Below the pieces are notes generated by a model, which was not told the DNA's origin, ran no database searches, and saw only the letters and a program-made list of their open reading frames with translations. From Podarcis gaigeae (Eukaryota): a stretch of DNA of 64,000 nucleotides. The stretch lies in NCBI GenBank assembly GCA_964106915.2, contig OZ066917.1; one strand, given 5' to 3'. Positions within the stretch are counted from its first letter, which is position 1. Each line of letters opens with the position of its first letter. Positions 3,242-50,967 of the stretch are shown piece by piece. A program made the translations under genes and the position numbers.

Positions 3242-6034
3242 ATCTGTGTTTTCATTGGAGAAATGTTGGAAGGCATGCAGTCTTTATCTTGTGTCTATGA
3301 GTCCAGTGAATTAAGATTCAAGAAGTGAACAAGTGACAGACTGCTGAAGAAAGTCTGTAATCTTCTGCTTATGTTATTGTGCTTGTGTCCTGTTCCTGCC
3401 TGTCAGCTTCCTCTAAGTATCTGGTTGATTGCTGTGTAAATAGAATGTGGGACTAGATGAGGCTTTGGCCTGATCCTGAAGAGCTCTGCTTGTGTTTTTA
3501 CCCAAACCTTAAGATCCTCTTTGGAAGCCTGCTTGGGTAACCTCACCAAATGAAGTGAGGTGGCTTTTCCAGTGCTGGGATCTCAGCTATTGAACAGCTT
3601 CTCCAGAGAGGCTTCCCTAACACCTTCTCTATGGTCAGTTCAGCACCAAGGCATTTAAATTTAAACCAACCTTGGTTTGTTCTGACTGAGTGAAGTGCTA
3701 TGAAAAAAAAGGTATTTTCTCTGAGTATTGTTGCTATACTAGTAGCAAATATTGTTCAACACAGAGTAAATGAAGAAAGTATCTTTTGCTGAATTGATTC
3801 ATTTGTGGAAATTCAAAACCAGCAAGCTTTTGACATTTTAGAGAGCTTTTCCTTTTTGCCTCAAAAGAACCTACATTTCTCCCAACAAGCTATCATCTTA
3901 ACTTATTCTGTTGTTTTATGCTGGCTTTCTGTGTGTTGTGCTACTATAACCTAGCTAACCCACTGTATGCTAAAAACGCAGCCTTGTTTGACACTAATTT
4001 ATTCCTCGGAGACTTCATCTTCAAGCCCACTTGATGTAATGTCAGATTTTGAAAAACATGGTGTGATGTCAGCTAATTTTACAAGTCAAATCTGTGTTGC
4101 ATTAGTGATTTCATACATACTGGGTTGCAAAGCTGCTTTTCATCACTGCAAAATTACATACGTGGGATATTACAGCATTTCTGATTAAATCATGCCTTCT
4201 GGATCCATTCAGATTGTTCCATTTAACTGAAGATGGGCAGTTTTGCAATGCACGTTTTGGCCTATGATTTTCCTTAATTCTACCCAGCATCAATGAAGTA
4301 TTGAAGAATTAACAATGGTGTTCTTGTGTAAAGAACTGATTTTGCTACATTTGCATGCCATAAAACTATTCAATTGTCTAAAACAGCGATAACAGGAGAA
4401 AATTGCTGCTATTGTGTCCCGTGTCCCTCTCTTTCTAGTAAGATTTAATTGCTTTGGACAACTAAGATAGAGTACCTTTCCCCCAGGACAGCTTCAGTAC
4501 ATCATCTGAGCTCCCCCCCCTTTCTTTAGAAACTAATTATTTAGAAGTTTTCTGTGGCAGATGTTCTGCAGTCAGAAGAAATGAGCTTATGCTGAACGGA
4601 GGTGAGTTGTGAGAGACTTTCACGATGGAACATTAAAACATTGCCAGACGCTCCTTCCACTAATTATTTGCATTTCCTTTGCTGGGACCAAAGATGATGA
4701 TGCAGACACAACTTTCCTTGCTAACAATGCAGCTGTTCTTGTGACTGGATCCTGCAGCGAATTCATCAGACAATGCTTATAAAGACCATTGTTAATGGGG
4801 GACTGCCATCAAATCACAAGTTCAGTTTTGACTTCCAGCACCCAAACAAGAGGTAACGACTTCAAAAATGTAGCTGCTCTGACAGTAGATAAGAAAAATA
4901 AAGAGGAACTGCAAAAAATAAAAATTCTCAACCAATTCCAAGGGAACTGGCTCCTGTTGAGAATACGCCTCAATGCTAAGGAATATGAATATAGATGTTA
5001 ATCTGAAGCTTTTTTTGGAGCAGGTTGAGCAATTCTTTTAGGCTGGAATGCCTGTTATGCATTGAAATTGCAAATAAATAAATAAATCTGTTGTTGGCAA
5101 AAGCCGTGGCAGAAGGAAGATGTTGTAGGTTCGGGGAAGCAAGTTTTATTCACCCCAAACCCAAGATAAACAATGGATTGAACAAGGTCTTTCTTGCCTA
5201 AGTGGGAAACAAGGCCGGTTCTATCATTAGGCAGACTGAGATGGCCAGCTCAGGCAGGAGACACCAAATCTTCTCTTGGCTCTTCCCTCCCTGCTGTTCT
5301 CGCCCTCTTGAGCTGAAACTCAAGCAGCATTCCTTGCTTGCTTGCTGCTGGTCTGAGTTGGCAATAGGGCCGTTGGGAAAGTTCTGAGTGAGCAAGCAGC
5401 CAGCTGAGGCCACACCATTCCACCAGGCACCACCCATGCAATGTATGCAGGAGTTACCCCGGTGGCTGCATTGCAGCACTTGAACAGGCAGTGAGCAGCT
5501 GGCAGAGTGGTGAGCAGGAATTAGATATTGGATAGAGCTGTGTGGTCCACCCAGCCTATCCTGCACCCATGAGCTACCCTACTGCCCACAAGTATGCTGC
5601 TTGATGATGTTCCATTGGCAGCATTGAAGCTGATTCAGCTGCCGGTCCGATCCCCTTCTATATATGGAATGGCGGTTGCAGCTTGTTCCTTTCAGCTAGC
5701 AGAATGAGCAGAATGACCCTTGATGTTGCCAAGATCTCAATATGCCCCTCCTCTCAACTCTATGCGTGGTTCGTATTGATGTCAAAAGTCAGAAATACTG
5801 GATTGCATTCCTATATGTAAGAGCTAAACTTGGGTAGAGAAACTCCCTCAGGAGTTGAGGCCAAGGAGATTTGACCTCAACCACCATGAACAGGCAAGAG
5901 AAAGGAAGAAAGAAAAGACTGCTATTGTAGTCAAGGGGAACTGATAAAGGAGAAGCATAGTCCAATTTAAGTTTGCTGTGCCTGGAGAGCAGAGCTAGGT
6001 TACGGAGGAAGCCGTCAAACTGAACTAAGAACTA

Positions 6035-6260
6035 CAGTGGTACCTCGGGTTAAGTACTTAATTCGTTCCAGAGGTCTGTACTTAACCTGAAACTGTTCTT
6101 AACCTGAAGCACCACTTTAGCTAATGGGGCCTCCTGCTGCTGCTGCACCGCCAGAGCATGATTTCTGTTCTCATCCTGAAGCAAAGTTCTTAACCCGAGG
6201 TACTATTTGTGGGTTAGCGGAGTCTGTAACCTGAAGCGTATGTAACCCGAGGTACCACTG
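6035..6260. mobile_element. Tc1/mariner (pogo/Tigger-like) MITE
   Basis: TIRs cagtggtacctcgggtta / taacccgaggtaccactg, preceded by TA. Confidence 0.85.
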
Positions 6261-6594
6261 TGAGACTGAGCCCTGAACACTGAGTTTCCAAGTTCCCCTA
6301 CCATTCTGTATTAACCACCAATGTCTTATCAGTTGTTAGGATCCCTAGTGATTTTAATTTAATATTGAACTGTCTTCCCTCCCACTTCAAAATAAAAAAA
6401 TCTGGAATTTCTTGGTTCTATTAAAACAAAGTGGTGGCCCCGCCAAAAATGCTGCATTTGTAGAATTCTAGTTCAGTCAAAGAATAATATGGAAAACCCT
6501 GATCCTTAGGTGACTTGGTATGCTTTTTCTAATATGGTGGTTAATTTGAATTGATGGAAGGTGTGCTTTTTGTCACATCTAAATATTATTATTG

Positions 6595-9244: not shown

Positions 9245-9283
9245 GGTATAAGCTTTCATGTGCATGCACACTTCTTCAGATAC
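9245..9283 (-). ncRNA. Minimal hammerhead ribozyme motif
   Basis: Minus strand reads gtat CTGAAGA a gtgtgcatgcacat GAAA gc tt atac: stem I gtat/atac, palindromic stem II, and AGCU palindrome at stem III. Confidence 0.65.
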
Positions 9284-9508
9284 AGTGGTACCTCGGGTTA
9301 CATACGCTTCAGGTTACAGACTCCGCTAACCCAGAAATAGTACCTCGGGTTAAGAACTTTGCTTCAGGATGAGAACAGAAATCGTGCTCCAGCGGTGCGG
9401 CAGCAGCAGGGGCCCCCATTAGTTAAAGTGGTGCTTCAGGTTAAGAACAGTTTCAGGTTAAGTACAGACCTCAGGAACGAATTAAGTACTTAACCCGAGG
9501 TACCACTG
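9283..9508. mobile_element. Tc1/mariner MITE inserted at the centre of the small PLE palindrome
   Basis: Perfect TIRs, TA on both sides. Confidence 0.88.
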
Positions 9509-12364
9509 TACATGCACACAAAACCCAGAACAAACTTAGTTGGTCTCTAAGGTGCTACTGGACAATTTCCCCCCAATAAATAGCTTGAGGCTACGATACA
9601 CGAGGGACTGTCTTCTCCCAGGCCAGCACGTCTGCTTCCTAAGATCTGCTGAGGAGGTCGTGGCCCAATGGTGGCCCAAACAAGACCTGGCTAGGATGCA
9701 TGAGGAAGGTTCCTCTGTGGTTGCATCTAGGCTGTTGGAATTTGCCTGCTGGAATTTGGCCTCAGCTCTCTCTGCTTTATGTCGCCTGGGGAAGACTATT
9801 GTTGTTCTCATCATCATAGCAGGCATTTGATCATCACAACCACCATTATTATGGCAGGCATTTGACCTGCCACGGTGAAAATTCTTCTGTAGCTGCCCTT
9901 CATGGGTGCATCAGATAACAAAAATCTCTTGCCTTTTTTATCTTCTTGATCATTTCATTGGCTTCAATGCTTTTAAAACTGCCACCCTGAGCACTGCCAA
10001 GTAGTTTAAAATTAAAGTTAAGGAGGGGGAAGCTCTCGCGCGGAAGTATGCAGGGGATGAGGACTATGACAAAGGGAATCAAAAGTGGACTGGGGGGAAG
10101 ATAACATTTATTCCTGTTGTAAACCCTTTAAAAAAAGGAATAAGAGTGTGAACAAATTATTAGAGCAGATGTTGCACTGGAAAGAACAGACACGTCATAC
10201 ATGACAGAAGTTAAATTAAACTTGGTTCTCCCTCCCACCCTCCCCCAATAAAATGGGACCACCAGGCCTAAATTGTTTTGCAGCTGTGGCGATGAAATGA
10301 TAGAACAGGACAGTGTAACTTTAGCCAAACCTCCGCTGGTGAAAACTGCTGACATTCTCCAGGGTAAGAGAAAGGACAGGCCTCAGCTTGCTACACATAC
10401 CCGAGCTAAGCTTGTCTTGTGAAACCCAGCTGTTGGCATTGTCAAGGCACCTGCCAAATTGACAACCTCCTGAATGCTCACACAGATGCACTTTGTTTTC
10501 CCCCCTATTAAACACTACCCAAGGTGGTAGCAGCAGAGTGATAAAGTATTAAACGAGAATTGCCAGTCTTCAAGCTGATGCACTCAATCCTGCGCTGCCT
10601 GAGCGAGTTTAATTTCTGGTTAAGACTGTTAAATATTTAAGCCTTTTGCACCCATGGAAATCGACGGTGGCTCAAATTTATCTGCAGATTAAAAAAGTAA
10701 ATAATTTGGATCCACAAATCAGTCTTATTCTACGAAGCCAGCTGAAAGCTGATTTCAAAAAGGAGGGCATTTTTACTTCTATTGTAATAACAAGGGATGC
10801 CACACTGGAAGAGAGAGACACTCTGCCTAGCCATACAACTGAAAGATATTTCTGACATAGCTTTAAAAGACTCAGCATATACACATTTTATAATCCCGTA
10901 TTTTAAGTTTATGTGTGTACATTTGCACGCTGATCTATTTTACTGTTGGGTGGATTTTTGCCAAAATGTGTGTCTTTGCAGGAAACAGCCAGATGTGTAG
11001 ATCTTCTTAAGCAGCAGCTGTGTGCCCCAAAAGCCACACTGAAAACAGCCCATCTTTGTTCTTGCTTACTGTCTCCAACAGTGAACAGGAAAGATTGTTA
11101 TCTTGCATGAGAAACAGGCTGATTGTATTTATTTGATTTTGAAAATTTCTACCCTGCTGTTCAGCCCAGAAGCTCTCCGACTGGCTAACAATAGATATTA
11201 AAAATACAATTTAAACAATGGAATGGAAAAAAACAAAGACAACAAACAGTCAGAGAAGTTTCAAAAATATGTTAGTGACGCTTAGTCAATACACAAATCC
11301 AACACTTGCCTTTGTGTTTCTATCTACTTTTAATGATATTACGCATAAATCAAATTGAGATAGTGGTTAAAAGGTGTTTAATAAAATAATAATAGTAATG
11401 ATGGTTGTTGTTATCTATTTCATTTATGAATCGCTTCCTATGAAGCATTGTGAAATGTTTTCACAATGAAATAAAACCATATATTGAAGAATTGCATATT
11501 TGAAAAACAGATAAAACAACAGCATGTATAAACACAATTGCATAAATAAAAATAATTCTCAAATCCAATGCAGCTACTGACTCGGATAAAAATCTTTATC
11601 ACATGTAGAGAGAGATAAGGCTCCATATAGAGGGTCACTGTGTGATCCACATGCACACACACCAGAACTCATCCAGATTTCACTCATCAGTGAAATTATC
11701 TGCAGATTGTATACCAAAATGAAGTGTTTTGCAATACCTGCTTTAAAACATCTGCAATATATTTTAAGGCTAGGGGAAGGGGGGGAAACTATTTCTGTGT
11801 GTAGCAGCTCACTGACAATCTGTCTGGTTCACAAGACAAATTATACCTCACTCATGGACAATAGATATTTAAACAGTACAATCTGGAACTTCAATTTCTG
11901 GATTCCTTTCTTTGCTGGGAAGCAACGCTCACAGACAGAAAGTCTTGCCTCACCTCTAAATATTGCCATAATTTACTCTGTATCTCTCCACTATTGGCAC
12001 AAACAAGCACAATTGTTTCTGGTGGTGGAAAAGCAGTTAAAGATCATTTACATTTTCACCTCCTCCCCTTTGCTTTTATTACTGTGTCACAGCTTTTAAC
12101 ACAAGTCTCCCCAAACCAGAAAAGAATTCTCCACCTAATATCCCCCAGTATAACGCGCTTAAATAAATTTTGGATGGCTGAACACTGTTTTGTGCCAGGC
12201 CCAAGTTTGCCGTCTAGACAGCACTGAGGTAAAAATGTATAGCATGTGTATCATAGTAAAGTCCTGAGCTTTCAAATATCGATGGATGGCATGGTTTTTT
12301 TCCATATACTGCTATTAGATATTTTAAGTATCTGTATTTAAAGTGTTCTGCCAGTGTTTGCACT

Positions 12365-12707
12365 GGAGGCGCAGGTGGCGCTGTGGGTTAAACCACGGAG
12401 CCTAGGACAGAAGGTCGGCGGTTTGAATCGCCATAACGGGGTGAGCTCCCGTTGCTCGGTCCCTGCTCCTGCCAACCTAGCAATTCGAAAGCACGTCAAA
12501 GTAGATAAATAGGTACTGCTCCGGCGGGAAGGTAAACGGCATTTCCGTGCGCTGCTCTGTTTCCTCTGAAGCGGCTTAGTCATGCTGGCCACATGACCTG
12601 GAAGCTGTACGCTGGCTCCCTCAGCCAATAAAGCAAGATAAGCACCGCAACCCCAGAGTCGGCCACGACTGGACCTAATGGTCAGGGGTCCCTTTACCTT
12701 TACCTTA
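12365..12707 (+). mobile_element. Sauria SINE
   Basis: ggtggcgctgtgggttaaacc head, gtagataaataggtac core, (accttt)n tail. Apparent TSD ccagtgtttgca. Confidence 0.9.
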
Positions 12708-16765: not shown

Positions 16766-19593
16766 TACAATCTTTGAAACCTCAGGTGTTTTGCTGTAGT
16801 ACAACTCCCACCATCTCTTACCACTGACCATGATGGGAGCTGATCTACCTAACTCCTCCAGAAGAAAAAGGTAACAGTGAATGGACACTAAATCATACTA
16901 CCAGCATGAGGATTTAATGATCTGTTAAATAGATGCACTGTCCAGGATGGCAACAATACTGCAGTAGAAGCCAACTGCTATGAATAAGATAAAACTATCA
17001 TAAGGATTACAAATGCAGGCAACTTGCCATTCATAGACATGTCATTTCCTTTCCTTATAGATAAGGATACATTTACACACAAATGGCCAAAATAACCATC
17101 AGTTTGGCATTACAACACACTGTTCTTCCCAGGGGGAAAAAAAAACCAAACTAAAGGGAAAATGTCAAAATACAAAACAGAAATGTGTTGTGCTATAGAG
17201 CCTGCTAAGGTGCTGACACAGAGTTTTACTGGACAAAGAAGCAAGGAGGAATTTCTAACAGTGGGCTACCTAACCTGCAAAAGAGGGAAGAGGTGTATGA
17301 GAAGCTCCAATATGGCAGAAACCATATTTTCCAAGTCAAGTGCATTCAATGCAACTACGGTATGCCTTTTAAGCTGAGGGAGTCCTAGAGGAAAACACAC
17401 AATTGAAACTGCTGTAAGGAAAGCTGCTGTCAATAAGACATCAGCATAATGGCTGTTTCAATACAGGCAGAGTGGGAGAGGAATTGGCAATAACTGTGCA
17501 TTGATCTACAAAATTATTATTTCTTTCCAACATCGTAGGGTCTCTGGAAAGAGTAATCAACTAATGGCCTTTTAAAGATCCTTGGATAAAAAACCAAAAC
17601 CCTATGGAATCAAATCAAAATGTTTTCTTTTAAAAAACACACCGTATTTTCTTCTTTATAAATACGTATAATAACTATTTTATTTAAGCTAGCTTGCTTG
17701 GCAGCATCGGGAGCAATGGTTTGTAAAACCAATGAAGGCTTGGGTTCTGATGCAAGAACAAGACAGTCAGGGCACTTTTTAAAATTAGAATGCAAAAAGA
17801 TTAGCAACCCTACAGAAGTGTAAATAAAGAAAATAATTGAACATCACCACTGAAATACTCATTCCAATGTGATATAAATAAAAAACCCTTTTTATGTAGC
17901 TGCCTGTTTCTGTTCTTTCCTTAGCATGTGAAGAATAAGCAAAATGTGTCCAAAATGGTTTTATACCAATTAGATGGAGTTGGTGGCTGCAATTGTTTCT
18001 ATGATGAAACAGTACCATAGCCTTCCTCTACCTGGTGTCCTCCAGATATTGTTGGACTCCAACTCCTATTAATCCCAGACAGAATGAACAGTTGCTGAAG
18101 GATAATGGGAGTTGTAGTCCAGCAACAGCTGGAAGACTCCAGGTGTTGGACAGCTGCAGTACAGATTCTGGCAGAGGTTACTGAACACACCATCACTTCC
18201 AAAGTACGTCATTTAAGAGCAGTGTTTCTGAGTATAGTACTAGGAATTTCATATCATTTTGACAGTTCTATCAGGGGACAGATATCAGCGGAACAGGGCT
18301 TTTGAAAAGGCTTTTACATTAATATTTTTTACACTGAAAAGGCTCTGTTACATTAATAGTTTTTTTTGCAATATTATCCCACAATCAGATCCGTTCATCA
18401 TCAAATATACTTTCCCCAAAACCCCATTCCAATTTGTACTTGAAATGTAATTTCCTCTTATACATTGACAGAATCAAATAATATCATTTACTTACTAATC
18501 CTCTTGGCAAAGGGGGCAGTATGAGCTTTTCTGCAAAGGTTTCCCCATGTTTATTCTGGTCTTTTTGAGTCCTTGTAACATTTTTAATCTGAAGATAGTG
18601 AAACCAAATTGGCCCACTGCCTGCCATTTCTTGAAATGGAGAAGTATTGTCTTTCAAAAGATCTGTAATTTTAAATAGCTGAAACTGATACCAATCAGGA
18701 AATCCCCCAGCAGTAAATCAGTATGATGGAATACTGATGTTAGTCAACCTAACTCTTCTCTTATCAAACCATTGTGATCTGGCAAGTGGCATCTTCTTGC
18801 TCACGTTTTAATCTAAAATCAGCCAGTCAAATGTTGCTGTGAATCTTGAAGCAAAGGGCTCTTTTCTGGTGCTTTCTGCTAACAGGTTGGGGCTGTGAAA
18901 ATCCCAAGTATGAAGGTTAACTGAACTGTGTAATTAGGTGGAAATAGGCAAAGATCTGTAGACCTCAGAAGCCTTCCTTGTTCAGAAGGTGCCTGTAAGA
19001 GTGTACCTACCAATGGATGTCATAGCTGAGAAAAATGGGTTGAAACCCAACTAGTCTTGCTCAGAACAGAACCAGTGAAATTAATGAACATTACTAACTT
19101 AGGTTTGTTCACTTCAATGGGTCCACACTGCTTAGGGCTAGCATTAGATAAAACCCAGTGTTAGCCAAGTATCAGCTTAGCAACTTAGACCTCATCCATC
19201 CAGATGGGGACTGGTGGAAGCACCTTAACCATGTCAAAGGCCACAATTAATTCCACTTAACTTTGCCTGCCCCAGCCTACCACCCATCAGTTCCACTGAG
19301 TGAACTCAGTTCTAGTGTTTGAGAAAGATATTATCTCTGTCTACTTTCCCCACTGCAAGCCAATCCAATCCAAATAACTTTATTGTACTAGACATTGGCC
19401 ATGACAAATCTGAATCAAAAATAAATACAAGCAAAAGGGGTGTCACGCCACAAATAATGGTCTCTATTTAGATCTCTGCGTCTCCCTTACAGTTCACTGC
19501 TATATTGTCCAGGGTCTTCTTTCTGATCTTTTTGGCTGCCAAAGCAAAAAGGGTGACATAAAGCCACTGAAGAATTTAGAACCTTCTCTGTAA

Positions 19594-19931
19594 GGGACGT
19601 GGGTGGCGCTGTGGGTTAAACCACAGAGCCTAGGACTTGCCAATCAGAAGGTCAGCAGTTCGAATCCCCGTGATGGGGTGAGCTCCTGTTGCTCGGTCCC
19701 TGCTCCTGCCAACCTAGCAGTTCGTAAGCACGTCAAAGTGCAAGTAGATAAATAGGTACCGCTCCAGTGGGAAGGTAGACGGCATTTCTGTGTGCTGCTC
19801 TGGTTTGCCAGAAGCGGCTTAGTCATGCTGGCCACATGACCCGGAAGCTGTACGCCGGCTCCCTCGGACAATAAAGCGAGATGAGCTCCGCAACCCCAGA
19901 GTCGGCCACGACTAGACCTAATGGTCAGGGG
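19594..19931 (+). mobile_element. Sauria SINE
   Basis: Same head and core as 12365-12707. Tail truncated. Confidence 0.9.
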
Positions 19932-20003
19932 AGAGACATCTTTCCTGCATGGACGGTCAGGTGAAAAATCGCCTCCTGGGTCCGATGTATAGTGGGCAAT
20001 ATA

Positions 20004-35584: not shown

Positions 35585-35752
35585 TAAGCTGGCTTGTGAG
35601 GGCTTGGTCCTAAAAGGCAGCCAAAAACCGATCACTAAATGTATGTATGTATGTATGTATGTATGTATGTGTGTATGTATGTTATAGATCAAAGAAAGAG
35701 AGAAGGGAGTAGCTGTATTAATAACATGGGGAACATGGTCGAAGGCACTTAC

Positions 35753-36191
35753 GCAGCTCTTCCCGGTGCTTCTCTGTTTGCTCAAAATACTGGCGGAGCT
35801 CTTCTGTGATCTCCATGTTGCTCAAGTCACACTCGATATCTGCTTCGTCTTCGGAGTCGGTGTCTGTTTCAGAATCGCTCTCCACGACCCCCCTGCCTGC
35901 GGCATTACGTGGGGCATGTTGAGACCTGGGAGGGAGCCTGGGTTGGCTCCCTCGTGTGAAAGCAGAATAGGACCCGGTCCTCAGGGGCTCCCCTTCATCC
36001 CAATCAGAGTAGCGTCCACTGGGAAGACTTTCAGAAGGAGAAAATGGCAGATTGTACAAGGACTCCATGGCTTTCCTGTAAGCATATCGGTGCCTGCTCA
36101 TCCACTCCATGGCTTGGTTGTAATGCTTCCAGTATCTCGCATAGACATTTTGGGAATACCATGGTCCTTTCTCTTGAAGCACTGAATCCCC
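35753..36191 (-). CDS. GEMIN8: GEMIN8 main coding exon (439 nt)
   Basis: GDSVLQEKGPWYSQNVYARYWKHYNQAMEWM...ECDLSNMEITEELRQYFEQTEKHREEL matches GEMIN8 motifs (PWYSHPVYARYWQHY; ECDLSNMEITEELRQYF). Acceptor ttcttag| at 36192-36193. Donor |gtaagt at 35752. 439 = 146x3+1 nt. Confidence 0.95.
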
Positions 36192-39339: not shown

Positions 39340-40240
39340 TGTATTATGCTTGCAGTGCTACCTTTCACAGACCTCTTATCTCGAGAATCTCATGTCTTAA
39401 AATGTATGCAACATAACACTCATGGTTTTAGGTCTGTGCATTTATTATGCCAAAAATTGCATTTTGCTTCGACTCCTATTCCCAGCCGCTTCCTTATTTA
39501 CCCTGCAAGAAGCGGTCAAGTGTCATTTAGGGGGACACATAAATACGTGGAACAGAGCTGCAAACAAACAAGTGTTTGCAAACACAGCTACTAATTCCTA
39601 ATAGGGGTTGGCTGCAGCTTCTTGTCAATTCTACACTGGGGGCAAACCTGTGAAATAGCCCCAATGGAGTGAAGGGAGAGGAAGATTCCTCAGTTAGGGC
39701 TTCCTGAGCTCAACTTCTTCTTGATTATATAGGAGGGGCTTTATCCATCCTCAGAGTCTTTCCTCCTCCTATATTTCTGATTCCTCTACATACAGGTACA
39801 TGACTCAACTGTTTTCAGCAGCACATGCACTTCTTCACATAGAATCAGCACTGTGGACTCTGTAACCAACTGCTATCCATGTACTGCAACTATTCGCTGC
39901 AAGCTGCCCAGAGGCATTTGTGTTTCGCAGCACCACTCAAATGCTGCAGGGATAAACACAGAGACAGAATCCAACAAATGTTTGTTGGGTCCCAAAGGCC
40001 CACCCGCCTCACGCCCCATTTCTCCTTCCTCCAAATCTGCCATGATGCCCTCTTTACGCTTAACCATTCTAAGCAATCTGAGCACATGTCTTTATTATGA
40101 GACAAAGCTTTAAAATGCTCGTTTGTTAAGGAAGGACTCACTGGCCATCCCCTTTCCCCATTAAACACACACACACACAGTCTCTCAGTTAAAAATGTGC
40201 CTGTGACCCCCCACAAAAATAACAATACTCTACAAAATTA

Positions 40241-40245
<5 letters not shown>

Positions 40246-40273
<28 letters not shown>
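40246..40273. repeat. (TA)n, left half of the PLE target site
   Basis: Seen directly. The right half is at 42569-42593. Confidence 0.95.
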
Positions 40274-40276
<3 letters not shown>

Positions 40277-40318
40277 GGTTTTGGTGTCCTCGGGTGTCTT
40301 CCCGTGTAAAAGTTGGGG

Positions 40319-40368
40319 TGTCTAGGCGACGTTTCGATGAGGTCTCACTCGTCATCTTCAGGCTGGTG
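40319..40368 (-). ncRNA. Mirror hammerhead motif with one stem II mismatch
   Basis: Reverse complement reads cagcCTGAAGAtgacgagtgagacctcatcGAAAcgtc. A G>A change at 40338 gives a C-A mismatch in stem II. Confidence 0.62.
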
Positions 40369-41355
40369 CTTTCGGCTTCTTGTTACTGGAACAGAGCGGG
40401 ATCTCAATGTTTGAGTTCCTATAAATACTGTAGAGGGGGTGTGGTGTCTAGCCTCCAATGTTCTGGGCAGAGAGGAAGTTCCCAGGCTAGTGTGCCTTTT
40501 CTTCTTTTGTTCCTTAATTACTTGAGAGATACCTTGAGTGATTTCTTGAGTGATATCCTGAGTACCACTTAGGTGGGTCATTAGGTGTGGATTAGTTGCT
40601 AAAGTCTTTGTGTCTTGACCTCTTGAACTTTGTGAAGAGTTTTCCTGAGAAGATGGCTGTATTGCACTTAGTTGTGCTTTGGCTTGGCTTCGTGTATAGG
40701 GGCGAGCTGTGGTTTTGTGGCTTGTGTCAGCCAGATCTGTGTAGGGATTGCAGGGGGGTGCGGCATCCGGAGGTGCCACCATGGATTGGCTACTGGATGG
40801 TGTCAGTAATTCATCTGTGGAGAGGGTCTGGGTTTGGGTCTGGTGTGGTTGATTGGTGTTGGCGTTCTGTGTGCCTCTGGATCTGGTGTCAGTTTTTGTG
40901 GGGAGGGCTAATTTCCAGATGTCTGGCAAGCGGGATGTGTCGTCACGCTTGTTCATGTTGTGAGGGTGTTTCTCTATCTCGATGGCTTCCATGATTATTC
41001 TCTTGTGGTGATGTTCCGTGTTAAAGAGCAATTTGGAATCTGCAAAATTAATTTCGTGTCCTGTTTCTTTCATGTGTTGGAAAAGAGAGGAAGTTTTTTC
41101 TTCTTTTTTGACGGCATTCTTGTGTTCTGCGATACGTGCATTTATTCGTCTGTTTGTTTGTCCAATGTACGTGGCTGGGCAGACTTTGCAGGGTATTTCA
41201 TAGATCCCTTGGTTTTCCAACTGGATTTTATCCTTGGGGTTTCTGAGGATATTGGCTATTTTTTGGTTGGTGCAAAAGGCTGTTTTGATATTGTGTTTAT
41301 GGAGGATTTTGCTAATTTTATCTGTAGTGCCCTTGATATAAGGAAGGAGGGCCAT
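40345..41355 (-). CDS. Mirror copy of the PLE GIY-YIG endonuclease ORF
   Basis: Protein identical to 41454-42464 in the ORF track. Coordinates are symmetric (sum 82809). Confidence 0.85.
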   Translation of the reverse strand: MALLPYIKGTTDKISKILHKHNIKTAFCTNQKIANILRNPKDKIQLENQGIYEIPCKVCPATYIGQTNRRINARIAEHKNAVKKEEKTSSLFQHMKETGHEINFADSKLLFNTEHHHKRIIMEAIEIEKHPHNMNKRDDTSRLPDIWKLALPTKTDTRSRGTQNANTNQPHQTQTQTLSTDELLTPSSSQSMVAPPDAAPPCNPYTDLADTSHKTTARPYTRSQAKAQLSAIQPSSQENSSQSSRGQDTKTLATNPHLMTHLSGTQDITQEITQGISQVIKEQKKKRHTSLGTSSLPRTLEARHHTPSTVFIGTQTLRSRSVPVTRSRKHQPEDDE

Positions 41356-41453
41356 GCCATTGTTTTCTTCTGTGTCTTGGTTTTTGGGGGGTGTTTCCTT
41401 TTGGGAAAAAGGAAACACCCCCCAAAAACCAAGACACAGAAGAAAACAATGGC

Positions 41454-42464
41454 ATGGCCCTCCTTCCTTATATCAAGGGCACTACAGATAAAATTAGCAA
41501 AATCCTCCATAAACACAATATCAAAACAGCCTTTTGCACCAACCAAAAAATAGCCAATATCCTCAGAAACCCCAAGGATAAAATCCAGTTGGAAAACCAA
41601 GGGATCTATGAAATACCCTGCAAAGTCTGCCCAGCCACGTACATTGGACAAACAAACAGACGAATAAATGCACGTATCGCAGAACACAAGAATGCCGTCA
41701 AAAAAGAAGAAAAAACTTCCTCTCTTTTCCAACACATGAAAGAAACAGGACACGAAATTAATTTTGCAGATTCCAAATTGCTCTTTAACACGGAACATCA
41801 CCACAAGAGAATAATCATGGAAGCCATCGAGATAGAGAAACACCCTCACAACATGAACAAGCGTGACGACACATCCCGCTTGCCAGACATCTGGAAATTA
41901 GCCCTCCCCACAAAAACTGACACCAGATCCAGAGGCACACAGAACGCCAACACCAATCAACCACACCAGACCCAAACCCAGACCCTCTCCACAGATGAAT
42001 TACTGACACCATCCAGTAGCCAATCCATGGTGGCACCTCCGGATGCTGCACCCCCCTGCAATCCCTACACAGATCTGGCTGACACAAGCCACAAAACCAC
42101 AGCTCGCCCCTATACACGAAGCCAAGCCAAAGCACAACTAAGTGCAATACAGCCATCTTCTCAGGAAAACTCTTCACAAAGTTCAAGAGGTCAAGACACA
42201 AAGACTTTAGCAACTAATCCACACCTAATGACCCACCTAAGTGGTACTCAGGATATCACTCAAGAAATCACTCAAGGTATCTCTCAAGTAATTAAGGAAC
42301 AAAAGAAGAAAAGGCACACTAGCCTGGGAACTTCCTCTCTGCCCAGAACATTGGAGGCTAGACACCACACCCCCTCTACAGTATTTATAGGAACTCAAAC
42401 ATTGAGATCCCGCTCTGTTCCAGTAACAAGAAGCCGAAAGCACCAGCCTGAAGATGACGAGTGA
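41454..42464 (+). CDS. PLE GIY-YIG endonuclease ORF (RT absent) with long S/T/Q-rich C-terminal extension; 336 aa from first in-frame ATG
   Basis: Motifs LPYIKG (PLE RT-EN linker), GIYEIPCKVCPATYIGQT (GIY-YIG with CxxC), RIAEH, HMKETGH, EAIEI and NMN. No stops. The frame is open back across the palindrome centre (41391). Confidence 0.85.
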   Translation: MALLPYIKGTTDKISKILHKHNIKTAFCTNQKIANILRNPKDKIQLENQGIYEIPCKVCPATYIGQTNRRINARIAEHKNAVKKEEKTSSLFQHMKETGHEINFADSKLLFNTEHHHKRIIMEAIEIEKHPHNMNKRDDTSRLPDIWKLALPTKTDTRSRGTQNANTNQPHQTQTQTLSTDELLTPSSSQSMVAPPDAAPPCNPYTDLADTSHKTTARPYTRSQAKAQLSAIQPSSQENSSQSSRGQDTKTLATNPHLMTHLSGTQDITQEITQGISQVIKEQKKKRHTSLGTSSLPRTLEARHHTPSTVFIGTQTLRSRSVPVTRSRKHQPEDDE

Positions 42465-42490
42465 GACCTCGTCGAAACGTCGCCTAGACA
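42441..42490 (+). ncRNA. Minimal type-I hammerhead ribozyme motif of the PLE
   Basis: CTGAAGA (42448-54), T, stem II GACGAG/tgagac/CTCGTC, GAAA (42474-77), CG, TC. This is the CUGANGA...GAAA..UH core with palindromic ACGU in place of stem III. Stem I is only ~2 bp. Confidence 0.7.
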
Positions 42491-43192
42491 CCCCAACTTT
42501 TACACGGGAAGACACCCGAGGACACCAAAACCTGCATTCCTGTACCCGTGAAAATCTACGAAAGCAAATATATATATATATATATATATATATGGTCCCA
42601 ATGAGTTCAAAGGTGCTTATGACCAGGCAAGCAAGTGTAGTAGGACTGCAACACAAAATAATATGCCACTGGGGTTAAAAAGCAACAACTTGTGCTTGAA
42701 GTAGCTGCCTTCCATGCTTGTCACTGGGTAATTAGCAGCTGAGATAGATGCCCCTGCCTGCTCATTTCATGCCTGCCTCCTCAATCAGGTTATCTTGACA
42801 GGCTGCTCTGTTGTGTGTCTCTCCCCATCACCTCCTTTACACAAGGCGATATGATTTGTAAGTAGCCCTATGGTGGTATTGGGCAAGAGATCAGCCAACT
42901 TGGCCAGAGCTACTGAGAGCTGTGTGGTAGAAGGACCCACCCAGGCTATTCTAGCTTCTTCTCCTTTCTCACACTTCAGAGCACCTTTGACAAGCCTATA
43001 CATATGTGAATATCAATTTTAGTAACAATGGATTCTGTGTTTTAACCTTTCGTATGCTGCTTCGAGAGGTTTTGTAAAAAGCGTTGAACGAACAACAACA
43101 ATATATTAATGTGGATCTAGGTACCACAGCACACAATTTGAATACTAAACTGATACATGCCAAAGACCATCAACAAATAGAAAGGATCTTAC

Positions 43193-43230
43193 CATGATCT
43201 ATGGGAATGTGCACCAGTGACCGATACAAA
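43193..43230 (-). CDS. GEMIN8: GEMIN8 short exon: 35 nt 5'UTR plus the initiator ATG (43195-43193)
   Basis: Strong acceptor ttttccttttgtcttttag| and exon end ...AGATCATG|gtaaga. A phase-0 junction places the ATG in frame with the exon at 36191. Total CDS is 3+439+257=699 nt (232 aa plus stop). Confidence 0.75.
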
Positions 43231-43810
43231 CTAAAAGACAAAAGGAAAATAAATAGGTGAAGAAATCAAATGTTTACATAGAGAGGAGTACAAAATTAAG
43301 CCTGTAGCCAGTTAGGGTTTCAGATTCAACTCGAGGTGCTTGTTTTGATCTTTAAAATGCAAGAAGGTTCAAGGCTAAGGGGTGGACTTTGGTAATATGG
43401 AGCCCTGAACGAGGACAAGATTTGATGCCCTCCTCGTTCTGGCCTTCTGTTCTGCACATACTCTCAAGTGCACTACGGCGTAGTTGTGGCAACTCAAATC
43501 GCCCAACTGACCAGGGCCTAACTCTGAGTAGGTGCTCATATATACAAATAATGAGGGATGTGCAATACTAGCCACATGGGGTGCAAGCAGGAACTCCAAT
43601 TATCTTTTGCAGCAAGATTTTTTCCATCGCTAAAGCCCAGTGGATCTGAATGAAAGGAGATGAGTGATATCAGGATTGCATCCATTCATCTGAAATGCAA
43701 ATTAGGACACTACTACAAGGCAGCACAAAGGCACAGCTAGCACAATTGTACAGCTGAGAAAGGGCGAGCAAGAGAAAAAGAGAGAGAGAGAATGATCATT
43801 ACTCACTCAC

Positions 43811-43880
43811 CCTTTGCCGCAAAAGGTGTTGGAAGTTCATACACCCTTGCCGACAGACTACTACTCGCATGGGAAAAGAT
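43811..43880 (-). other. GEMIN8: Probable GEMIN8 5' exon (70 nt) containing upstream ATGs
   Basis: Acceptor atttcag| at 43881-43882, donor AAGG|gtgagt at 43810. It lies between the CpG island and the ATG exon. Confidence 0.5.
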
Positions 43881-44939
43881 CTGAAATTTCTCAGGCCCAA
43901 AGATGCTAAGGAGATGGAATTTACAGTCATTCTCCCTAGTTTTCAAGGGAAGCAGAAAAAACCTACAGGAATACTAAGCTGGCGGTGATTATTAACAGAA
44001 GACTGCAGAGATTCTGCTGTACTCTGAGCCTGCAGATCTGTAGCACATTAAGCTCCAGTTCCATTTTGTATGTCCCAAACCGTTCTGTTTCCCATGCTCC
44101 AGCTCTTTTAAAGTTTGTCCATGTCTCTCATAGTTTATACATGCTCACTGAATTTCTTTAATATGACACATCTGGTCTCTGGCAAGGTCGCTGTTATAAG
44201 TATAACAAGGTTCCTTTCCCACATTTAGGATACAGAGTCTTTTGTATTTGCCTTTCCTGTTTCCTGACTATTCTTAGGGTGGCATTCAACTAAGTTTGAC
44301 TCAGAGTAGACCGACTGAAGTTAATGAACACTAAATTAGGTCCATTAATTTCAACGGGTTCTACTCTGAGTAAAGCTTAGCTGGCCAAATATCTTTATTA
44401 ATAGACTGACTGCCTGAATCAAAAAGAATCACCTCTGAACTGTCCCAGGTATATGCAGAAGTGTTTCAGACAAGGGCAAATGTTTTCCACTTTGCATTTT
44501 GCATTCGACAATCTGGCAGCTTGACAGGAGCCAACACAACTGTAGACTCAAAAGTTTAGTTTGTGAACAGCTGCTGGTTGTTGAAGCCACTGTGTGCACG
44601 ACGTCTTGATTTCCGTCACAAGGTGGCACCAAAACTATATGAACTGGGGGTGCTGCTTGCCCGAGTTTATTTTATAAATCCAGGGTGGGAGCTGATGGAA
44701 ATCCAACAACACAGATTTTCCATCCTTAATGTAAATGAAAATATTATCTGGTCCCATGTGGATTCTTATTATTATGTATTAAATTTCTTTACTGCCCTTC
44801 ACCGGAAGACTACAATATATAAAACTGCAATATTAAAAAACCACAAAAAATACATAGCATAATAACAAACAAAAACTAAAACCCTCACAGTTTAAAAGGC
44901 CATAGATTGTTTAATTAGTCAAAGGCCTTGGAGAAGAGG

Positions 44940-48893: not shown

Positions 48894-49133
48894 AGCACTT
48901 CTGTTTATAAACCAGCTGCCCAATCTTAATCCCCTTCACCTTGAAGAGTAGAAGGCAAGAAAGCCTCAGGAGTATCCTTGCTATATTTTGCGAGTATTTT
49001 GAGGGCAGCAGCCCAGAAAAGACCACCTTTCCTCAGCTGGGTACCCTTAGCCATGGCTCATCTTGGCTGGGAAAGGCTGGTGTGGCCAAAGTTAGAGATT
49101 AGACGCCCAAATGGTCTGGCTGGGTCTCTAAGG

Positions 49134-49264
49134 CAAGCTTCCTCAACCTCGGCCCTCCAGATGTTTTTTTGGCCTACAACTCCCATGATCCCGAGCTAGC
49201 AGGACCAGTGGTCAGGGATGATGGAACTGTAGTCTCAACCTGGAGGGCAGGTTGAGGAAACCTG
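49134..49264. mobile_element. hAT-like MITE carrying ctacaactccca motif
   Basis: 8-bp TSD ctctaagg (49126-33 and 49265-72). TIRs caagcttcctcaacc / ggttgaggaaacctg. Confidence 0.75.
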
Positions 49265-49269
49265 CTCTA

Positions 49270-49830
49270 AGGCGTTGCGTGCCCTCCCATTAACTCCGGG
49301 AAGCGAATTCCCACGGGGCGATGGGAACAGGATGCGGGAAAGAGCAGGATCCAATCCCTCCCCTCGGCAAGAGCCGCGTGGACAGCAAGGCACCTGCCCT
49401 TGGGAACTCCTGGTCTATTTCTCCGCTGAGGTGCTTCAGGAGCGGCACCGGCAAAGCCCCCACCCCACTGCAAAAGTAACTGGCTGGGATCGGGGCAAAC
49501 ATACTTCGGGCGTAGGGCGCGCAGCAAGAACCGAAGACCGCGCCGCGCCCGGCTCTTCCTTCCTGCAGGCGGGGAAAGGGAAGAGGTGGAGTCTCGCTGC
49601 GACCGGGAAGCCAAGCGCCCGAGCTGCGTCTCTTTCGCGGGGAGAGGGCGGCATCTGCTGGATCGGAAGCGCGTTAACGCTGTGCCTGGAAAGAGAATTG
49701 GCTGCCTGTGCCTCATGCTTTTAAAGCACGTTCAACGCAGGCGCCCACCCACCCCACATTCTGGGAACTGTAGTTTGCCCAGGGTGCTGGGAATTGCAGG
49801 TCGGGTAAATTACAGTTCGCGTGCGTGTGT
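49270..49830 (-). promoter_or_regulatory. GEMIN8: CpG island, putative GEMIN8 promoter and first exon (candidate donor AA|gtatgt at 49504)
   Basis: This is the most CpG-dense non-repeat stretch in the window and lies upstream of the GEMIN8 exons on the minus strand. It has ETS-like (c)ggaag sites (~49603, ~49664) and ZNF143/SBS-like ctgggaactgtagt at ~49761. Confidence 0.7.
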
Positions 49831-50521
49831 GAGCTTTTAATACATTGTGTTTTAATGCCCTAACCCGCCTTAACAGTGAAAGGCAGGTAATTAATAATAA
49901 TAGTAATAATCATCTCTAGTAAGTATGACCAACAGGCAGGAATTTGTAGTCATACTTACCCAATGGTAAGGCTTGGTGTCTCTCTCTGTGTGTGTGGGCG
50001 CACACACACTAAACAGTGTCATCGTGTGTCATAACTTACAAGGTATGACTCCCAGAGGACAATACTGTAGCTTGAAGGGAACACACACACAAGAAAGCTC
50101 AGAAAGACTGATCCAAACAGGAATGGGGATGAAGCTATCTCACCCATTACCAGTGCTTTTTTTCTGGGGGGTACGCATACCCCTAAACATTTTGTGAATC
50201 TAAGTTTGGCCCCATTGAGGGGCAGTATTTCAATATACATTTTTTTTAGAATAAAAGCACTGCCCATCACGATGACAAAAGCCAATCCTCACCATTGCCA
50301 CACTTCACAAAGCTGTGCATAGGAATGAGAGAGGAGTTCTGTTCCATAACTGTTCAGAGATTCCTGCACAACCAGGGTCCTATGTGACACCAAGAGTGAG
50401 ACAAGTGGTTGTGGCTTGGGAAAACCACTTTGTGAGCCAAATTAGGATCCCTGATGGGTGTAATTAGGACTGGGCTGGAGGTTCCTAACTCCTGATTTAA
50501 TATATGCAACATTTGTACAGT

Positions 50522-50868
50522 TGGTGGCGCTGTGGGTTAAACCACAGAGCCTAGGACTTGCTGATCAGAAGGTTGGCGGTTCAAATCCCTGTGACGGGGT
50601 GAGCTCCCGTTGCTTGGTCCCTGCTCCTGCCAACCTAGCAGTTCGAAAGCACGTCAAAGTGCAAGTAGATAAATAGGTACCGCTCCGGCGGGCAGGTAAA
50701 CAGCGTTTCTGTGCGCTGCTCTGGTTCACCAGAAGCGGCTTAGTCATGCTCGCCACATGACCCAGAAGCTGTACGCTGGCTCCCTCGGCCAGTAAAGCAA
50801 GATGAGCGCCACAACCCCAGAGTTGTCCACGACTGGACCTAATGGTCAGGGGTCCCTTTACCTTACCT
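50522..50868 (+). mobile_element. Sauria SINE
   Basis: Same head, core and tail as the other copies. Confidence 0.9.
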
Positions 50869-50967
50869 AAACTGCTCTTGGGGTGATATTCTCTGATGAA
50901 CTAGAAAATTAACCTATGGCTAATTTCATGTGTATAATGAGGAGGGGGAGAAAAGGAAGCACACACA

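Follow-up and report, generated by a model that had tools for sequence, protein, structure and literature searches.

Known Penelope-like insertions and the present locus

Penelope-like elements (PLEs) typically carry an inverted, 5'-truncated partner copy and a one-sided tail of 30-40 bp (PMC8557442; for Penelope of D. virilis, PMC2377424), and the origin of their tandem and inverted structures is still an open question (PMC8557442, PMC11167929). In Poseidon_Ac (PAc) of Anolis carolinensis the ORF opens at a hammerhead ATG, self-cleavage of the hammerhead needs protein, and reverse transcription has two start sites, one at +111-118 and the other a tail-length from it, the tail being the stretch between the two; ORF nucleotides +116 to +172 are required in the template RNA (PMC11167929). 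Penelope elements of Adineta vaga form head-to-head inverted repeats, whose palindromic junctions have been attributed to self-priming (PMC3846280).

The locus described here lies in a window of 64 kb, the whole stretch of Podarcis gaigeae DNA that was analysed. As in PAc, a GIY-YIG endonuclease (EN) is C-terminal, the ORF starts at hammerhead stem II, the target is AT-rich and a tail lies between two start sites of reverse transcription (RT), the right end (+115) falling within the +111-118 start region of PAc (PMC11167929). It differs from PAc, as judged by eye from the supplement, in being a distinct family, whose C-terminal extension is longer and whose hammerhead stem I measures 2 bp, and in that the present copy is a truncated inverted pair rather than a tandem source element. 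With the insertions in Figure 2 of PMC8557442 and those of PMC2377424 it shares an inverted 5'-truncated copy abutting the 5' end, a tail of 30-40 bp at a single end and a microsatellite target, but here both partners are truncated at almost the same nucleotide and the whole 2.3-kb insert is one spacer-less palindrome. The palindromes of Adineta vaga, in contrast, measure 18-38 bp and are situated at pLTR ends (PMC3846280), compared to arms of 1131 nt that include the EN region. Non-LTR retrozymes (10.64898/2026.07.22.740005) and MRC1 (PMC8557442) are likewise PLE-derived, hammerhead-bearing and devoid of RT, yet they are amplified, non-coding and arranged head-to-tail, whereas the present copy is head-to-head and its centre displays no sign of amplification. 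Neither kilobase-long zero-spacer PLE palindromes nor the present family were found in the literature on PLE structure and squamate PLEs, a weak argument for their absence from it. Published descriptions already cover inverted truncated partners, tails and palindromic junctions, and the near-perfect symmetry is the unusual part; the palindrome is a limiting symmetric case of PLE inverted insertion.

In LINE-1 twin priming, both target strands prime cDNA and the two cDNAs meet in inverted orientation, the second priming being internal and the inverted parts non-overlapping. At the present locus both primings would instead be at the 3' end of the element, hence the duplicated arms. The classic LINE-1-like form is found in one relative (L003).

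Structure of the palindrome

The preliminary description of this DNA had reported a palindrome with 1131-bp arms, a 4-nt spacer and only two differences between the arms, all of which was reproduced: the inverted arms occupy 40272-41402 and 41407-42537 around GGGA, and they mismatch at exactly two places, 40338/42471 and 40762/42047. The insertion is bracketed by (TA)15 and (TA)13, and its features are as follows.

40244-40273, no strand: left target microsatellite (TA)15; a target-site duplication is not delimitable inside the tract
40272-41404, minus strand: left arm, a tail-less, 5'-truncated PLE 3' end that ends at +84 of the parent ORF start and holds both differences from the family contigs
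40328-40361, minus strand: predicted minimal hammerhead motif, left copy, with a C-A mismatch in stem II from the change at 40338
40345-41404, minus strand: startless RT-EN ORF remnant, left (linker, GIY-YIG endonuclease, low-complexity C-terminal extension)
41403-41406, no strand: centre GGGA, with GG parental (left arm) and GA non-parental; possibly a snap-back loop
41407-42537, plus strand: right arm, a 5'-truncated PLE 3' end that matches L001 and L005 without a difference along all 1131 nt
41407-42464, plus strand: startless RT-EN ORF remnant, right; first in-frame ATG at 41454, an out-of-frame ATG at 41449, stop codon in hammerhead loop II
42448-42481, plus strand: predicted minimal hammerhead motif, right copy, with a 6-bp stem II, an ACGT palindromic stem III and a 2-bp stem I; the parent ORF ATG is at 42454
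42538-42568, plus strand: 31-nt PLE "tail", at the right end only, corresponding to +85 to +115 of the parent ORF
42568-42593, no strand: right target microsatellite (TA)13

Compared with two family contigs from public sequencing runs (L001 and L005), which have 0 differences from the right arm over 1131 nt, both mismatches fall on the left arm. They had been taken for CpG transitions; the change at 40338 is indeed a CpG loss, and also disrupts a stem II pair of the left hammerhead, but the change at 40762 is a CpG gain relative to the family contigs, so that CpG decay does not account for both. The left arm agrees with the parent up to 41404 and the right arm from 41407, the two letters in between (GA, 41405-41406) being non-parental. 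The breakpoints are offset by 2 nt, which corrects the earlier reading that the halves break at essentially the same nucleotide. The accompanying proposal that the unit reads the same on both strands does not hold, because 31 nt at 42538-42568 extend the right arm without a counterpart on the left, and the unit is thus not strand-symmetric.

The putative minimal hammerhead at 42448-42481 is mirrored on the left arm, as expected from the claim that each half ends in such a motif, although the left copy carries the stem II mismatch. It was found by motif and is conserved in lacertid-type, agamid and snake copies. The region folds no better than shuffles (z about -1), so that its support comes from motif conservation, and the Rfam search detected no hammerhead, just spurious miRNA-hairpin matches at the centre. 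The ATG equivalent to 42454 opens a full ORF in a tandem copy of Phrynocephalus (L006; period 2941 nt). In the palindrome the two motifs lie on opposite strands, the RNA of each strand having one that is paired with the antisense arm; a head-to-tail tandem of hammerheads able to release a monomer is not present. The hammerhead DNA pattern had no match among metagenome contigs, collections with little or no lizard DNA in which a blank is uninformative. The antisense strand of the element has, some 70 nt upstream of the ATG that opens the ORF, a TATAAATA box (40420 on the plus strand and 42382 on the minus strand of the window); from each arm, these boxes aim at the palindrome centre.

The parent family

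The parent appears to be a young and very abundant autonomous retrotransposon of the Penelope/Poseidon type. Both frames in the window are open (357 aa counted from a GTG), and their GIY-YIG match is weak (Pfam E 0.001, below the cut-off). In the endonuclease alignment C70, C73, H108, H114, R88, H92, E137 and N149 are invariant, which corresponds to CCHH plus the catalytic R, H, E and N. The RT-EN linker has a single Cys and lacks the extra CX2-5CxxC zinc finger that separates Neptune and Nematis from Penelope/Poseidon (PMC8557442). These predicted endonuclease and linker features fit Penelope/Poseidon as defined in that study, and together with the RT-EN homologs they support the Penelope identity originally assigned to the locus.

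L005 (protein P0060), identical over the arm, matches both RVT_1 (E 4e-5) and GIY-YIG (E 4e-4) and has 587 nt more on its upstream side, where the frame continues through the RT thumb and the YVDD motif; the relative P0062 matches RVT_1 with E 6e-17. The parent letters preceding 41407 are present in three runs. Since family contigs identical to the right arm continue in frame into the RT, the window ORFs are startless remnants, the 3' part of an RT-EN ORF without its native start. An RT followed by a C-terminal GIY-YIG domain in one ORF is found in the family and was lost from the window copy by truncation. The preliminary description had seen two intact endonuclease ORFs without RT: they are open and RT-less, with no RT or other family sequence found elsewhere in the 64-kb window, but they are 3' remnants and not intact genes. 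At 0-2 differences from the family, open frames are the default for such a copy, and intactness as a sign of function was rejected on this ground. As regards a stand-alone GIY-YIG gene, there is no native start and no divergence from the family from which selection could be gauged, none of the sequencing runs containing the sequence is recorded as RNA, and a search for EN-only homologs yielded no stand-alone endonuclease family, the squamate matches retrieved being broken PLE copies.

The homologs are RT-endonuclease proteins of Phrynocephalus, Ahaetulla and Crotalus, plus beetles, together with a fragment in Podarcis muralis (92%), and a search of representative sequences confirmed a large PLE family. 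The protein had no match among viral contigs and, among metagenomes, just distant termite-gut loci (33-46%), both being collections with little or no lizard DNA; the single palindrome in these termite-gut loci (L013) seems unrelated. Lizard (L005) and Crotalus (L007) RT-EN proteins are 79% identical, with a distance of about 0.54 at four-fold sites, and beetle elements are the nearest named relatives outside squamates (about 60% over the endonuclease). Horizontal transfer of the family is a possibility. Family fragments are annotated inside host proteins (P0017, P0006, P0031, P0055: Podarcis TSNAX, snake P2RY1, ACOT12 and an olfactory receptor), likely through mis-annotation or exonisation.

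The two ends of the insertion

With the hammerhead ATG as the start of the count, +84 is the last position of the left arm and +115 that of the right. The Crotalus locus L007 is almost the same in this respect, with ends at +83 and +113 and a tail on one side only. Positions 41375-43400 of the window were compared with the exact Logan contigs of four sequencing runs (X1, X3, X4 and X5, of which X4 is conspecific and X5 belongs to another species). In all four, contigs go from 42537 directly into (TA)n, which indicates that family members generally have the +84 end. A tail, the (TA)n or AT-rich target and the tandem or inverted partners likewise occur in L002, L006-L009, L016 and L017.

Given the two RT start sites of PAc, the +84 and +115 ends both resemble positions at which reverse transcription began, with the (TA)n target as primer. 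A single event would hence have employed both reported start sites, one at either end, an arrangement in favour of priming by both ends of the target.

Several relatives display additional arrangements. L002 has a tail at either end, tandem as well as inverted copies are present in L006 and L017, and the two inverted insertions of L016 lie less than 600 nt apart. The host flanks of Crotalus L007 (4150-4195 and 8420-8470) have an inverted stretch of about 20 nt in common outside the (TA)n, which looks like an inverted copy of target DNA.

Recurrence of the centre

In X4 the arm reaches a contig depth of 17,035 (41412-41513) and 25,000 (41984-42045) against 12.5 in the flank, about 1,400 times the flank, while the contig depth across 41406 is 0. 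At this position X3 likewise has a depth of 0, X1 reaches 282 at most (flank 72.6, hence about 4 times) and X5 has 29. Contig depth cannot be equated with copy number, and Illumina libraries may lose palindromes, but a unit that had been amplified would be expected to stand out. One X5 contig spans nearly the same centre with CC inserted, at a depth of 16.8 against 94-126 in the flank, and may be an independent junction, a possible fold-back hotspot or a chimera. The parent sequence at the centre holds a 3-bp mini-hairpin (TCC-AAAA-GGA). Between 42463 and 42530 the depth climbs steadily toward the 3' end, with its maximum over the hammerhead region, which suggests many very short copies of the family.

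Other junctions of the family lie elsewhere. The inverted junction of L001 is situated about 240 nt upstream of the present centre, with arm starts about 60 nt apart, and further joints connect 41404 to 41700, 41402 to 42041 and 41404 to 41543, the offsets of these joints being, in ascending order, about 150, 295 and 634 nt. Seven assembled squamate loci (L002, L006, L007, L008, L009, L016 and L017, with two insertions in L016) contain eight head-to-head insertions, every one with a different centre; the seven offsets that were measured amount to about 1345, 635, 720, 731, 872, 1120 and 644 nt, in loci that were reached via gene predictions and are maybe biased to long arms. L003 is of the twin-priming type, L004 a plain truncation and L010 consists of fragments.

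The preliminary description had raised the possibility of a self-contained, non-autonomous "hairpin endonuclease" unit, to be abandoned in favour of an ordinary inverted truncation if the junctions of other copies differed. Dispersed copies with a common internal junction were not found, either in the depths of X1, X3 and X4 or among the other junctions. Every other junction in view lies elsewhere, and the depth at the centre is zero in the conspecific run against about 1,400 times the flank over the arm, which speaks largely against a replicating unit and leaves that reading unsupported.

Origin of the palindrome

We consider it likely that the palindrome arose recently, in one retrotransposition event of an autonomous Penelope/Poseidon-type family, and is a dead end. 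Its identity, truncation, tail and (TA)n target, the high copy number of the family and the unamplified centre are direct observations, from which we infer the following pathway. The RT-EN protein of a full-length source copy would cut both strands of the (TA)n tract, and both target 3' ends would serve as primers on element RNA, with reverse transcription starting at ORF positions +84 and +115, resulting in two outward-facing 3' ends with a tail on only one of them. The two cDNAs would then be joined at their 5'-truncated ends. Their stops would usually come to lie hundreds of nucleotides apart, and at this insertion would have been coupled.

In a toy model of independent exponential truncation an offset of 2 nt has a probability of 0.04-0.16%, which makes coupling likelier than coincidence for a given copy and suggests that the cDNA ends were coupled, perhaps by snap-back. 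In the version that we slightly prefer, the top-strand cDNA would halt at ...CCTTTTGG, gain GA, fold on its own T run over the GGGA loop, be copied and meet the +115-primed cDNA. In the alternative, to which we give nearly the same weight, both cDNAs would run off one broken RNA 5' end and subsequently be end-joined. Snap-back over a GGGA loop most simply accounts for the centre letters. The hairpin is weak (-0.8 to -1.8 kcal/mol), and since RT errors would end up in both arms after a simple snap-back, the confinement of the differences to the left arm does not favour it; these are two sites only and possibly arose after insertion. The coupling of the breakpoints by fold-back or self-priming, as put forward in the preliminary description, is a reasonable idea. 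A near-zero offset occurs in none of the assembled relatives, and our own data consequently do not show coupling as common. We see about an even chance that the family regularly gives rise to perfect palindromes, as a class of products with mechanistic coupling. A fixed fold-back site at the linker position, or a low-copy re-mobilised EN-hammerhead palindrome, with near-identical centres across lizard species, appears very improbable.

Other courses of events also have to be considered. The 2-nt offset could be coincidental, in a double-primed insertion whose cDNAs were truncated independently. The offsets of the assembled relatives, all large and unrelated, agree with this, as do the private differences confined to one arm, and in a family with at least about 1,400 copies reaching the centre position, an event with a chance of 0.1% should occur about once in each genome. 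However, such a one-per-genome event is unlikely to be met in the small share of the genome that was examined, and the L001 offset of merely about 60 nt and the low-depth X5 contig over nearly the same centre are further points against independence; we regard a coincidence as unlikely. Alternatively, an asymmetric head-to-head insertion may have lost its spacer during or after integration, a hairpin or cruciform loop being clipped and rejoined. Inverted insertions in the relatives are normally asymmetric, and the two non-parental centre nucleotides are compatible with end-joining. Yet long inverted repeats tend to gain central spacers and not to lose them, a tendency to which this course would be contrary, the insertion is of very recent date (its arms differ from the family contigs at 0 and 2 sites), and no longer allele was seen in the limited view that the run contigs offer, all of which renders the loss of a spacer decidedly improbable.

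A self-contained non-autonomous hairpin unit copied as such, or a family-wide fold-back site that is strong and fixed, would be in line with the X5 contig (depth 16.8) over the same centre with two extra letters and with the known non-autonomous PLE derivatives; transcription across the centre could start from the TATA-like boxes at 40420 (+) and 42382 (-), and zero depth is no proof, as Illumina libraries can lose palindromes. Against this, the centre has depth 0 (X4, X3) or at most 282 (X1) where the arm has tens of thousands or more, and the X5 centre differs in sequence and stays far under its flank depth (94-126). Such a unit would moreover be asymmetric with a one-ended tail, its ORFs are startless and would be buried in duplex RNA, and it is without +116 to +172, for which reasons we give this explanation hardly any credence. 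Just as little speaks for a fold-back read, as an artefact of assembly or library. Logan contigs do break in repeats, but each flank is a unique sequence unlike the other, the ends (+84 and +115) are those to be expected on biological grounds, the arms differ at two sites around a centre that is no self-mirror, the same layout is present in independent assemblies, and contigs of X1 span 41406.

Host context and consequences

The large coding exon of GEMIN8 is located at 35721-36191 on the minus strand (Pfam E 4e-46). The palindrome is probably inside a GEMIN8 intron, in which case the GEMIN8 pre-mRNA probably contains a 1.1-kb duplex. Right-flank contigs of X4 and X5 appear to extend 107 and 113 nt past 42601, off the element, which is approximately the distance through (TA)n to the (CA)n at 40165-40179. 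This fits an empty (TA)n allele, and the insertion may be polymorphic.

The insertion is probably an inert dead end, since it has no RT and no native start, read-through RNA would form a 1.1-kb duplex, and +116 to +172 are missing; the requirement for this stretch, up to +172, was established in vitro in a distant relative. Where a genome contains thousands of nearly undiverged copies, counts of junctions could separate snap-back, run-off from a shared template and independent truncation.

A candidate upstream exon of GEMIN8 lies at 43810-43925 on the minus strand, with a GT donor near 43810, and the kilobase at 49001-50000 is CpG-rich. The window also contains dispersed short repeats, SINE-like or small elements with terminal inverted repeats (e.g., 12376-12706, 19584-19943, 50505-50870, 6033-6261 and 9280-9511), which together with AAT and other microsatellites represent ordinary lizard repeats.
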